A DNA stretch of 56,315 bases, taken from the NCBI RefSeq assembly GCF_001194135.2, contig NC_068994.1:29985807-30042121 (forward strand). The letters run 5' to 3'. Shown here one piece after another: positions 11,222-52,550 of the stretch (position 1 is its first letter; each line of letters starts with the position of its first letter). The translations under genes and the position numbers were made by a program. Source of the DNA: Octopus bimaculoides (Eukaryota). The notes under the pieces were generated by a model. The model saw only the letters and a list, made by a program, of their open reading frames with translations, was not told the origin of the DNA and made no database searches.

Positions 11222-13213
11222 CTAAGAACTGCTGTTTTGCCGAAGTTTCGAAGAAATGCTTTTCGAAGCAGCTTTTTGGCAACATTTAGGTTCCTTCTGC
11301 TTATTCTGTTTCAATTCTTGAGATGCAGATGTTGAACAGTTTTTAGAAAGTGGACCCCATCTAGGTGATGCCATGGGAAAGCCTCTTGACCAACCATAGT
11401 GACTACCCCAGCCTGGAGACATTGGCGGCAAATAGGTGGAACCCATCAGAGAAGGAATGGCTGCTGGCTGAAACTTCATAGCTGATGAAGACATCTGCAT
11501 CTGTCGATGTAGATCACTCGCAGCGCCAACATTGCTAGCATCCGGTCCATGCAGGAGCCATAAGCTGTCAAGCCCTGAATCAAGATGTGAACTTGGTGAT
11601 GTGATACTATTCTCATTGCAAGAAGATGTTGGCAAAGAACTTGTACCAGAAGATGCCTCTTTCTGAAGTTGTTGCTGTTGTTGTAGGCATGCATTCATCC
11701 ATTTTGAAAACATGCTTGTATTCTGCTGTTTGCTTGCCATAGACCGTGGGTCTTGCTGAAAAAATATTTCCTCATCCATTGAGCCCTGAACACACACATG
11801 GTTATTGAACTGTGACTTCTGTGAAAATTGTTTTTTGCAAATGCAGCAGAGCAACGGATTTTTATCAGAACTGTTTGATGGTACTGTAGGCATCTCCACA
11901 GCAACACTGTTATTGTTGTTGTTGTTGTTAGTGTTGTTGTTATTGTTGTTGGTGGTGGTAGTACTAGTTTTATCATGATGTTGAGAGCTTGCTTTTGAAG
12001 AACAGTAACCATTTTGGTTGTTTGTGGGAGATTGTTCACTTCTCGTGACTTCCTGAAGAGAATCTATATTTGATTTTTTATCCTCATTCTGACATTGCTG
12101 TTCTTTCAACAATTTCAAACCATGGGTTCGCTCATGATTCTTTAAAGTGCTTCTCTGTGAGAAAGCTTTCCCGCAAGTTAAACATACAAATGGTTTTTCG
12201 CCAGAGTGAATCCGTTCATGATTTCGTAAATTTGTCACTTGACTAAATGCTTTCCCACAGACCAAGCACACATAAGGCTTCTCCCCCGAATGTGTTCGTA
12301 AATGGTTTTTCAAATCTGTTCGCTGGGCAAATGCTTTAGGGCAAACTGTACATGCAAATGGTTTTTCTCTTGTGTGGACGCGTAAATGGTTTCTTAGATC
12401 TGTTCGTTGGCTAAATGCTTTTGGGCACATCATACAGTGAAAAGGCTTCTCTTTGGTGTGAACCCGCTCATGATTGCGTAAATTTGTCAACTGGCTAAAT
12501 GCCTTAAGGCAGTAGGAACATGTATATGGCTTGATGCCTGTGTGTACCCTTTCGTGACAAGTGAGTTCTGCCTGCTGGGCAAAGGACTTCAGACATACAG
12601 AGCAAGTATAAGGTTTTATTCCTGTGTGAATTCTCTCATGATTTCGAAGATTGGTCAGCTGGCTGAACGCTTTTGAACACGTTAAGCATTTGTAAGGCCT
12701 CTCACCAGAGTGTATCCGCTCATGATTACGTAAGTTCGTGCGCTGGCTGAAGGATTTGGAACACACCAAGCAAATGTATGGCCTTTCCCCACTGTGTATA
12801 CGTTCATGATTGCGCAGGTTTGTACGTTGACTAAATGCTTTTAAGCACACAAGACACACATAGGGTTTCTGACCAGTGTGAGTTCTTTCATGATTTTGGA
12901 GGTTCACTTTCTGTGCAAATACTTTTTCACACGTATTACATTTAAATAATTTAGGTGGAGTGTAAGGCATATTACTGCTTTGTCCACCCACAATCTGATT
13001 TGGTGCTTGGCTGGAATTTAGCTTGGTATTCATTTTCATAGCTGATGTTTTACAGTTTTGAGAAGTTGACAGGACTGATTCTGAGGAAACCATAGTTGGA
13101 CTTGAATGAATCAGTTTTGAAGTATCCTGTTTTAAGTTGGCTGGGGACAATGCAAATGTTCGATTGCAGAAATTTCTTTGGGTAGGCACCCCATATATCG
13201 GGAAAGGATACAT
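11222..13213 (-). CDS. C2H2 zinc-finger protein ZNF-A, 663 aa: 10 tandem fingers, one degenerate finger, poly-N and poly-Q tracts, conserved C-terminal Trp-rich motif
   Basis: Uninterrupted 2-kb ORF with CxxC-x12-HxxxH repeats and TGEKP-type linkers. Polypyrimidine tract plus AG acceptor (13224-13223) ends 9 nt before the ATG. Fingers differ mostly by synonymous changes. Confidence 0.96.
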   Translation of the reverse strand: MYPFPIYGVPTQRNFCNRTFALSPANLKQDTSKLIHSSPTMVSSESVLSTSQNCKTSAMKMNTKLNSSQAPNQIVGGQSSNMPYTPPKLFKCNTCEKVFAQKVNLQNHERTHTGQKPYVCLVCLKAFSQRTNLRNHERIHSGERPYICLVCSKSFSQRTNLRNHERIHSGERPYKCLTCSKAFSQLTNLRNHERIHTGIKPYTCSVCLKSFAQQAELTCHERVHTGIKPYTCSYCLKAFSQLTNLRNHERVHTKEKPFHCMMCPKAFSQRTDLRNHLRVHTREKPFACTVCPKAFAQRTDLKNHLRTHSGEKPYVCLVCGKAFSQVTNLRNHERIHSGEKPFVCLTCGKAFSQRSTLKNHERTHGLKLLKEQQCQNEDKKSNIDSLQEVTRSEQSPTNNQNGYCSSKASSQHHDKTSTTTTNNNNNNTNNNNNNNSVAVEMPTVPSNSSDKNPLLCCICKKQFSQKSQFNNHVCVQGSMDEEIFFQQDPRSMASKQQNTSMFSKWMNACLQQQQQLQKEASSGTSSLPTSSCNENSITSPSSHLDSGLDSLWLLHGPDASNVGAASDLHRQMQMSSSAMKFQPAAIPSLMGSTYLPPMSPGWGSHYGWSRGFPMASPRWGPLSKNCSTSASQELKQNKQKEPKCCQKAASKSISSKLRQNSSS

Positions 13214-50555: not shown

Positions 50556-52550
50556 TTAGATGACACCAGCTTGCTGGCTGTTTTGTGACCGATTGTTTTG
50601 CTGTTTGCTCTGCCTCACCCCGCATGACAGATTTGACGAGGAGTTTGCCCAGCTCGAGCTCCACCTTGGCGGGACTTGGAAGCCGCGAGACCAACCATAA
50701 TTGGATTCCCACGATTCCCAGGTCGAAGACATCCAGGACGAAGACAATGCAAGGGGCTGCAAACGAAGTGCAGCTGAGCGGGAGTGAGCATGAGATGATG
50801 GGCTTGGTGCTGGTGGCGGCGGTGTGGCTGGAACGGATGACATAGAGTTGTGTGAAGTTAATGATGCATTCATAGTTGGTGTGGAGGAGATGCTTGAGGA
50901 GAAAACTGGTACAGTTACTGTAGCAGCCCCAGCAGCAGCAGTGGCAACAGAAGAAGTAGAACTGGACACTACATTAGCTGCAGTTGACAATGTTGTACTT
51001 ACACTTGTTGAGGAATTAGAATTATGAGAGGTGTTTGAATTCGGGTTTTCCCTAGCGGAAGATGAATGGTGCTGCTGCTGCTGTTGTGGTTGCTGCTGCT
51101 GCTGCTGCTGTTGCTGCTGTTGTTGATGCTGTTGGTGATGGTGGTGGTGTTGGTTGTGGTGATGACCATGATTACGGTGATGGTGGTGGTGGTGGTGATG
51201 GTGATGCGACTGTTGCCGTGACATGCTTGTTGTAGATGTGTCCTTTGACAGCTGCTCAGGTGGCATTGCTCGACTGACTTCTTCACGAGTGTGAGAGCGC
51301 ATGTGTTTTTGCATGTTTACCCGTTGAGTAAACCCTTTACTGCACACAGCACAGCTGAATGGTTTGTCAGCTGTGTGTGTATACTCATGCTTTTTCAGGT
51401 TTGCTCTCTGGCTGAATCCACGCTGACATGTGCCACATTTGAATGGTTTCTCTCCAGAATGAACGAGAAGGTGAATGGTTAAGTTGGCTCGCTGAGTGAA
51501 ACCCTTTTTGCACACCTCACAGTAAAACAATTTACATTTTGTGTGTGTGCATGCATGATTGATTAAATGCACTCTCTGCGTGAATTCTTTACTACAGATA
51601 TCACATTGGAATCTTTTCAAACCCATGTGCATACATTCATGCTTTTTCAAGTTTGCACTCTGTGCAAAAGCTTTGTCACATATGGAACACTTGAATGGTT
51701 TTTCTCCACAGTGAATTCTTTCATGGTTCTGGAGATGAATCTTTTGACTAAACGTTTTGGAGCACACAAAGCAAGAATATGGCTTCTGACCACTATGGAC
51801 ACACTCATGATTAGTTAAATGCACACGCTGGCTGAATGCTTTCGAACAAATGCTGCACTGGTAAGGTTTCACTCCACTGTGAATGCGTTCATGGATGATA
51901 AGATGGGCTTGCTGGCTGAATGCTTTGCAACAAACAACACAGACATATGGTTTTATTCCACTGTGAATCCGTTCATGACAGATGAGGTGTGCCCTCTGGC
52001 TGAATGCCTTTCGACAAACGTAACAAGCATAAGGTTTTATGCCTGTATGAATACGTTCATGGTTTTGCAAATGTGCTCTTTGATTAAATGACTTTGAACA
52101 TATTGCACAAGAGAATGGACGTTCACCAGTGTGAACACGTTCATGGCTCAGCAGGTGAGCTCGTTGGCTGAATACTTTGCCACAGAAACCACAAGCCAAG
52201 TTTTTGAAACTCTCTGTGGCATGGTCCCGTTCATGGTTTCTTAAGTTTGCTCGTCGTGAGAAAGCTTTACGACAGATTTCACACTTAAAGGCTTTGGTAC
52301 TTTCTCCAAATCGATGCAGAAATGATTTTCGGTGGTGCGATATCCCATAATATGAACTCGAGGTACCAGATGTACTAGCTGTACCAGATGTACTAGGTGT
52401 GTCAGAAGTACTAACTGTGCCAGAAGTACTAGAGGTTGTGCCAGATGATGTAGTTTTCCAGTTGTCTTCCGGTAAAATTGTCCGACTATAATTGTCAGTT
52501 GAGGACATTTGTTTACCAACAGAATATGAAGATGTTGGTTCCTGGTACAT
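50556..52550 (-). CDS. C2H2 zinc-finger protein ZNF-B, 664 aa: N-terminal STSGT repeats, 12 fingers, poly-H/poly-Q, conserved C-terminal Trp-rich motif
   Basis: Uninterrupted ORF with 12 CxxC-x12-HxxxH units; paralogous C-terminus with ZNF-A; candidate acceptor at 52675-52674. Confidence 0.96.
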   Translation of the reverse strand: MYQEPTSSYSVGKQMSSTDNYSRTILPEDNWKTTSSGTTSSTSGTVSTSDTPSTSGTASTSGTSSSYYGISHHRKSFLHRFGESTKAFKCEICRKAFSRRANLRNHERDHATESFKNLACGFCGKVFSQRAHLLSHERVHTGERPFSCAICSKSFNQRAHLQNHERIHTGIKPYACYVCRKAFSQRAHLICHERIHSGIKPYVCVVCCKAFSQQAHLIIHERIHSGVKPYQCSICSKAFSQRVHLTNHECVHSGQKPYSCFVCSKTFSQKIHLQNHERIHCGEKPFKCSICDKAFAQSANLKKHECMHMGLKRFQCDICSKEFTQRVHLINHACTHTKCKLFYCEVCKKGFTQRANLTIHLLVHSGEKPFKCGTCQRGFSQRANLKKHEYTHTADKPFSCAVCSKGFTQRVNMQKHMRSHTREEVSRAMPPEQLSKDTSTTSMSRQQSHHHHHHHHHHRNHGHHHNQHHHHHQQHQQQQQQQQQQQQPQQQQQHHSSSARENPNSNTSHNSNSSTSVSTTLSTAANVVSSSTSSVATAAAGAATVTVPVFSSSISSTPTMNASLTSHNSMSSVPATPPPPAPSPSSHAHSRSAALRLQPLALSSSWMSSTWESWESNYGWSRGFQVPPRWSSSWANSSSNLSCGVRQSKQQNNRSQNSQQAGVI

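Follow-up and report, generated by a model that had tools for sequence, protein, structure and literature searches.

A conserved three-block tail module in a small coleoid subfamily of C2H2 zinc-finger proteins

The window analysed here, a stretch of 56,315 nucleotides of Octopus bimaculoides DNA (contig NC_068994.1, positions 29,985,807 to 30,042,121), is draft sequence, rich in AT, interrupted by six N gaps and dotted with many microsatellites. Apart from those due to N runs or repeats, only two of its open reading frames (ORFs) reach 130 amino acids (aa): ZNF-A and ZNF-B, both on the minus strand and both encoding C2H2 zinc-finger proteins. Each matches exactly a called single-exon gene of Octopus bimaculoides assembly GCA_001194135.2 (chromosome CM046614.1, at ~29.99 and ~30.03 Mb). 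The two proteins share a segment near their C-termini, which is best explained as the core of a protein-level motif module of ~60-70 residues. The module lies in a C-terminal tail predicted to be intrinsically disordered and is restricted to a small, old, coleoid-only C2H2 subfamily. The features of the two genes, in window coordinates, are:

11222-13213, minus strand: ZNF-A single-exon coding sequence, 663 aa (ORF with an identical gene call in CM046614.1).
13166-13213, minus strand: ZNF-A N-terminal motif MYPFPIYGVPTQRNFC, residues 1-16 (M1 and Y2 invariant).
12122-12952, minus strand: ZNF-A tandem array of ten C2H2 fingers, residues 88-364 (Pfam; AlphaFold2 (AF2) predicted local distance difference test (pLDDT) ~80).
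11279-11482, minus strand: ZNF-A whole module in three blocks, residues 578-645 (family alignments A2 and A3).
11357-11410, minus strand: ZNF-A core WGSHYGWSRGFPMASPRW, residues 602-619 (W602, Y606, W608 and R610 invariant in nine full-length sequences).
11294-11314, minus strand: ZNF-A block 3, LKQNKQK, residues 634-640 (Q639 invariant; family consensus SC.(V/M)KQ.KQ).
50556-52550, minus strand: ZNF-B single-exon coding sequence, 664 aa (ORF, gene call, Pfam).
52503-52550, minus strand: ZNF-B N-terminal motif MYQEPTSSYSVGKQMS, residues 1-16 (alignable with the N-terminal end of S. pharaonis P0124).
50601-50771, minus strand: ZNF-B module ALRLQPLALSSSWMSSTWESWESNYGWSRGFQVPPRWSSSWANSSSNLSCGVRQSKQ, residues 594-650 (tail BLASTP and alignment A2).

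ZNF-A consists of the N-terminal motif, ten tandem C2H2 fingers, a low-complexity linker, one isolated finger and a disordered tail bearing the module. ZNF-B is laid out as the N-terminal motif, twelve C2H2 fingers, a His/Gln-rich low-complexity region and, again, a motif-bearing tail. In both proteins Pfam recognises C2H2 families only.

A preliminary description, made from the letters of the window, had reported a motif common to the two tails, and it lies exactly where it was placed: 11357-11482 (minus) encodes ZNF-A residues 578-619, AMKFQPAAIPSLMGSTYLPPMSPGWGSHYGWSRGFPMASPRW, and 50661-50771 (minus) encodes ZNF-B residues 594-630, ALRLQPLALSSSWMSSTWESWESNYGWSRGFQVPPRW. When the two tails are compared by BLASTP with the fingers stripped, this segment is the sole match (18 of 38 residues identical, E=6e-7), all other high-scoring pairs having E>2. 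The strings GWSRG and W[ST]RGF occur at these two sites only in the six-frame translation of the window. The K/RQxKQ element seen after the core holds up as well and is a conserved feature of the family; its residue Q639 (ZNF-A numbering) is invariant in the nine full-length members. The same description held the two proteins to be largely unalignable outside the fingers; this was nearly right, but it overlooked a second similarity at the very start of both proteins, MYPFPIYGVPTQ in ZNF-A and MYQEPTSSYSVGKQ in ZNF-B.

We ran a profile of five tails (alignment A1) with HMMER against 1.84 billion representative proteins, clustered at 50% identity. Thirteen matches had E<=1e-3. Ten of them are credible (E=6e-9 to 4e-39), each being a C2H2 protein or fragment that carries the motif close to its C-terminus; the last three (P0130-P0132), repetitive proteins other than zinc fingers, were judged chance matches. 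Members named by their source come from Octopus vulgaris, O. sinensis, O. bimaculoides, Argonauta hians and Acanthosepion (Sepia) pharaonis. In addition, two papers identify runs containing P0127 as RNA-seq of Sepia esculenta larvae, P0099 was placed by its named cluster mates, and P0007 is probably from Sepia, its cluster mate P0141 belonging to the same Sequence Read Archive series as P0127. A full-length search returned the ZNF-A ortholog P0001 of O. vulgaris/O. sinensis (99% identical), P0007 from a Logan assembly as a full-length relative (54% identical), and P0010 (O. bimaculoides) and P0099 as clearly different paralogs with the same tail. Conservation in orthologs and paralogs, on which the initial proposal depended, is supported by homology and profile searches together with alignment. 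The ZNF-B protein is a called gene in the assembly index without an entry in the clustered protein collection, which is why no ZNF-B-type representative stands among the profile matches.

No credible match came from outside the cephalopods in a library whose eukaryotic proteomes range widely, with vertebrates, insects and crustaceans among them (Nautilus coverage was not confirmed). Given the breadth of the library, this absence is meaningful at the sensitivity reached, at which every species-assigned match is a coleoid cephalopod, in line with the lineage specificity first proposed. Word-indexed searches gave no match for the ZNF-A tail alone and only P0127 for a 13-tail profile; these negatives reflect the index rather than biology, since known relatives of 99% identity were missed as well.

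Aligning 13 tails (A2) resolves three blocks, and on this sequence evidence the module is larger than had been seen before. Block 1 reads S.RLQ..a..(S)SWM.S.YLh.M, block 2 QSWENNY.WSRGFPm.P and block 3 S.W.N...SC.(V/M)KQ.KQ. W, W and R are invariant in the 13 tails, while Q, Y and P are conserved in at least 90%. PRW, previously counted as part of the motif, is confined to groups A and B and does not characterise the family; the other groups have PPLL..W or PPM...W. Among the 31 motif-bearing proteins scanned, 34-57 residues separate the end of the core from the C-terminus, with the exception of one read-through gene model; in full-length members the range is 40-57, ZNF-B being counted at 40. 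These full-length members all follow one layout: N-terminal motif, 6-14 C2H2 fingers, fast-evolving low-complexity linker, module.

The N-terminal element turns out to be a constant companion of the tail. All full-length members begin, at the initiator Met, with MY(P)..P.Y..(G)(N/K)Q..F, where M1 and Y2 are invariant. In a set of 150 fetched proteins the tail motif is present in every one of the 17 that show this pattern, and neither terminal motif is present in any of the ~115 unrelated poly-zinc-finger proteins of the set. ZNF-B and S. pharaonis P0124 can be aligned in two segments only: 75 aa of the tail, with 61% identity (E=3e-24), and 32 aa at the N-terminus, with 47% (E=8e-4). The remaining non-finger sequence does not align. 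The N-terminal motif may be the second half of the functional unit to which the tail module belongs. We define a MYP-ZNF subfamily by an N-terminal MY...Y/F..Q, a C2H2 array and W.{3,5}[YF].W.R.[FY] at 34-57 residues from the C-terminus (40-57 in full-length members). ZNF-A and ZNF-B have all three.

P0124 itself (Acanthosepion pharaonis CAE1244983.1) is a 301-aa model of the ZNF-B counterpart that carries both terminal motifs and no zinc fingers. It runs on beyond the conserved ...QQAGVI end, as a gene-model artefact or a finger-less form.

The pairing of the two ends could also mean that they bind each other, or that they mediate homo- or hetero-association, as a dimerisation device with a SCAN- or ZAD-like role. 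Their invariable co-occurrence, their status as the sole conserved non-finger segments between ZNF-B and its Sepia counterpart and the presence of several paralogs per genome are all consistent with association. Full-length AF2, however, gives pLDDT ~30 at both ends and no indication that the N- and C-termini pack together, from a shallow alignment and an output that includes no contact map, and we regard this explanation as doubtful.

At least five members exist in octopods: ZNF-A, ZNF-B, P0010, P0138/P0123 and P0154/P0099, with P0129 of Argonauta as a possible sixth group. Octopods and cuttlefish are both represented in four of these groups; the duplications therefore predate the split of Octopodiformes and Decapodiformes. 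The four O. bimaculoides paralogs that were located all lie on CM046614.1, at 3.39, 4.98, 29.99 and 30.03 Mb (L005, L021, L001 and L002, respectively), and in O. vulgaris, O. sinensis and Argonauta, too, the copies whose contig is on record fall on one chromosome or contig per species. The accessions of two O. vulgaris members differ by three (CAI9733332 and CAI9733335), which suggests proximity.

These numbers bear on the framing of the preliminary description, in which the motif was the effector module of a large C2H2 family. A cephalopod counterpart of KRAB, acting family-wide behind the large octopus C2H2 expansions, would fit the lack of any known effector domain in the members. Cephalopod genomes contain well over a thousand C2H2 genes, none of which is known to have a described effector module; the 2025 study dedicated to the cephalopod C2H2 expansions mentions no effector modules or motifs and puts the C2H2 proteins of O. 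bimaculoides at ~1,450 (PMC12513265). Against this total, the module is found in ~10 clusters at 50% identity among the 1.84 billion representatives, and so marks a small old subfamily rather than the large expansions. Its members are deeply conserved single copies, with 99% protein identity between Octopus species and pN/pS ~0.04 (pN and pS, proportions of nonsynonymous and synonymous differences), and not fast-turnover tandem arrays. The KRAB-counterpart idea is thereby largely refuted: the motif cannot account for the large lineage-specific expansions, which tempers the earlier reading.

Comparisons between relatives show selection on the tail. Sliding-window identity between octopus and decapodiform counterparts sets the module apart as an island: for P0010 and P0122 it is 5-45% in the linker and 70-95% in the module; for ZNF-A and P0007 it is 10-35% and 50-65%, respectively. 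With Nei-Gojobori counts for ZNF-A against the contig of P0007, its probable cuttlefish ortholog, pS is saturated in every region (0.75-0.95). Nonsynonymous differences are fewer in the fingers (pN 0.07) and the motif core (0.16) than in the N-terminal region (0.50) and the linker (0.59). Synonymous differences are present within conserved H, G and P codons of the same pair. The low pN of the core, the saturated pS and the synonymous changes in kept codons together show that what is constrained is the protein sequence rather than the DNA or RNA. The whole ZNF-A gene is strongly constrained between O. bimaculoides and O. vulgaris (pS 0.08, pN 0.003); as the entire protein is 99% conserved, dN/dS within Octopus says nothing specific to the motif.

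In this last pair, ZNF-A codons 453-663 (11222-11857, minus) differ at 4 of 131 synonymous sites, compared with 29 of 283 in codons 1-452. The synonymous divergence of the 3' third is thus about threefold lower (Fisher p=0.011). This could be due to an additional constraint at the nucleotide level, such as RNA editing or structure, or to noise.

The same data dispose of a further explanation, namely chance similarity in low-complexity sequence, a nucleotide-level element or an antisense ORF. The tails are indeed compositionally biased, and an 86-aa antisense ORF covers the ZNF-B tail (50585-50845, plus strand). This ORF is not shared with ZNF-A, where no antisense ORF of at least 80 aa overlies the motif. 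Chance is refuted by the pairwise E=6e-7, falling to 4e-39 with the profile, and by residues kept despite saturated synonymous sites. We consider the motif almost certainly a real, selected and coleoid-restricted protein feature. It is undescribed and has persisted since before the octopus/cuttlefish split.

Searches of Pfam, PDB sequences and the literature agree with this novelty. Neither tail has a Pfam match at E<=10. KRAB (PF01352), SCAN (PF02023), BTB (PF00651) and ZAD (PF07776) are all missing from ZNF-A and ZNF-B at E<=1 and from ten relatives at E<=0.01, so that the initial statement that none of them is recognisable holds. Likewise, the motif does not correspond to an already described domain: besides the empty Pfam scans, there is no significant match in the PDB and its strings have no occurrence in relevant literature. 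The PDB profile search brought up the BRD2 bromodomain at a non-significant E=0.52, partly through a His-tag, and we rejected it as chance. Two Acanthosepion pharaonis members, P0121 and P0128, bear 'KRAB' in their source annotation; the Pfam scan finds no KRAB in either, and the name is misleading.

Structure prediction, also among the checks initially suggested, returned a disordered tail. With the 13-sequence alignment AF2 models it without secondary structure, at a mean pLDDT of 55 and a predicted template modelling score of 0.13; in full-length ZNF-A, the fingers reach pLDDT ~80, compared with ~30 for residues 1-85 and 515-663. These predictions, made with shallow alignments, favour a group of short linear motifs within a disordered tail over an autonomous fold.

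How might such a module work? At roughly 55% probability, we read it as a putative partner-docking effector motif, acting jointly or in parallel with the N-terminal motif. The basis is the conserved aromatic/Arg island in a predicted disordered tail. The fingers would put the protein on DNA. The exposed aromatic and arginine residues (W, Y, W, R, F, P) would then form a linear docking motif, folding upon contact with a conserved nuclear partner. The module would be the effector end of these factors in the manner of SNAG, eh1/WRPW or PxDLS peptides, and not a folded KRAB-like domain.

We scanned the 13 tails with regular expressions for such peptides. The Groucho/TLE patterns (WRPW/Y and eh1) and the CtBP pattern PxDLS each scored 0 of 13. 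A classical nuclear localization signal (NLS) was found in 0 of 13 and a PY-NLS core, which is therefore not a conserved feature, in one. A SNAG-like start (MPRSFLVKK) opens no full-length member, all of which start with MY(P/S/T/Q).

These scans also speak to a different function, in which the module regulates its own protein as a non-classical nuclear import signal, a degron or a modification site. Here, a transport receptor or a ligase adaptor would recognise the aromatic core and the KQ.KQ or K-rich stretch behind it. A roughly constant distance of 34-57 residues from the C-terminus, the disordered context and the basic/polar KQ.KQ block after the core all fit this scheme. The near-absence of recognisable NLSs fits it less well, and the invariant W/Y/W/R/F are richer than in typical degrons. 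C2H2 arrays, for their part, usually have nuclear-targeting capacity themselves, which counts against an import signal. Altogether, self-regulation seems possible but unlikely.

Several points weigh against the docking motif that we favour. WRPW, eh1, PxDLS, HBM, LxxLL and PPxY are absent from the tails, and no partner can be named. A small fold is still compatible with the low pLDDT, given the shallow alignment. The restriction to cephalopods depends on one hidden Markov model search with a five-sequence profile and on the proteomes in the library. ZNF-A is itself a divergent member, with GWGSHY in place of SWENNY and without the W.N and SC elements. Finally, in Sepia esculenta P0127 the ORF of the tail lies +1 out of frame with respect to the upstream zinc-finger ORF of 564 aa. 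The frame breaks inside a run of eight A (L006 2166-2173; region 2158-2216), and one A fewer would fuse the two ORFs. The break recurs in five independent run assemblies (L006-L010), two of the runs being RNA-seq according to the papers. It could be a real frameshift, slippage or the mark of a decaying copy, and the module may accordingly be dispensable or decaying in some copies.

Outside the module, the sequence between the fingers and the tail differs between the two paralogs. ZNF-B has long poly-His/poly-Gln tracts there (residues ~445-500; 51050-51220, minus), the equivalent in ZNF-A is a poly-Asn tract, and such homopolymer linkers are not kept between them. The isolated eleventh finger of ZNF-A (residues 453-478; 11780-11857, minus) is predicted by AF2 at pLDDT 72-83 and is followed by a predicted helix, SKWMNACLQQQQQLQKEASS (residues 502-521; 11651-11710, minus; pLDDT 50-64). 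Finger and helix are each ~50% conserved with the probable cuttlefish ortholog, and the surrounding linker is divergent.

The two-terminal-motif signature can be searched for, and it selects a small, deeply conserved and chromosomally linked subfamily, older than the octopus/cuttlefish split and subject to strong purifying selection. It thus gives a short list of candidate coleoid-specific regulators. The four invariant residues W, Y, W and R offer mutational handles toward the partner protein.

We now compare the module with known systems. Like KRAB, SCAN, ZAD and BTB, it is a lineage-restricted conserved element outside the fingers of poly-C2H2 proteins. Those domains are N-terminal and folded or zinc-binding, whereas the present module is C-terminal and predicted to be disordered; it also lacks a Pfam match and occurs in a handful of old paralogs, not in a large expansion. 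SNAG, eh1/WRPW and PxDLS are short effector peptides of zinc-finger and other transcription factors. The tail module resembles them as a short conserved island, rich in aromatic and basic residues, in the disordered terminus of a DNA-binding factor. At the extreme N-terminus, where SNAG resides, these proteins have the MYP motif that is paired with the tail module. Differences from these peptides are the unrelated sequence, the MYP rather than MPRSF start of the proteins and the greater length of the module, with three blocks spread over ~60 aa.

A third likeness is to the GW/W tryptophan motifs, which dock into Trp pockets of Argonaute/PIWI or CNOT9. In 'Ago-hook' proteins several Trp residues flanked by G, S, T, N, D or E lie in a disordered region and bind such pockets. 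The tails described here have invariant tryptophans in a region predicted to be disordered, and ZNF-A reads GWG....GWS, which we take as a lead only. At least one W flanked by small or polar residues is present in 12 of the 13 tails. Unlike in GW/W motifs, GW or WG appears in just six of the 13 members, the second invariant W usually following L, V or N, and there are two or three Trp instead of many dispersed repeats. By analogy, then, it is a long shot that the W-motifs fit Trp pockets of an Argonaute/PIWI-clade or CNOT9-type protein or, in a more modest version, that the N- and C-terminal motifs recruit a coleoid-specific corepressor. If corepressor recruitment were true, it would be the first defined effector system of cephalopod zinc-finger factors. 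Docking to Argonaute, PIWI or CNOT9, if true, would mean that sequence-specific DNA binders anchor small-RNA or deadenylase/silencing machinery at chromatin loci, and that this coupling arose in the coleoid ancestor.

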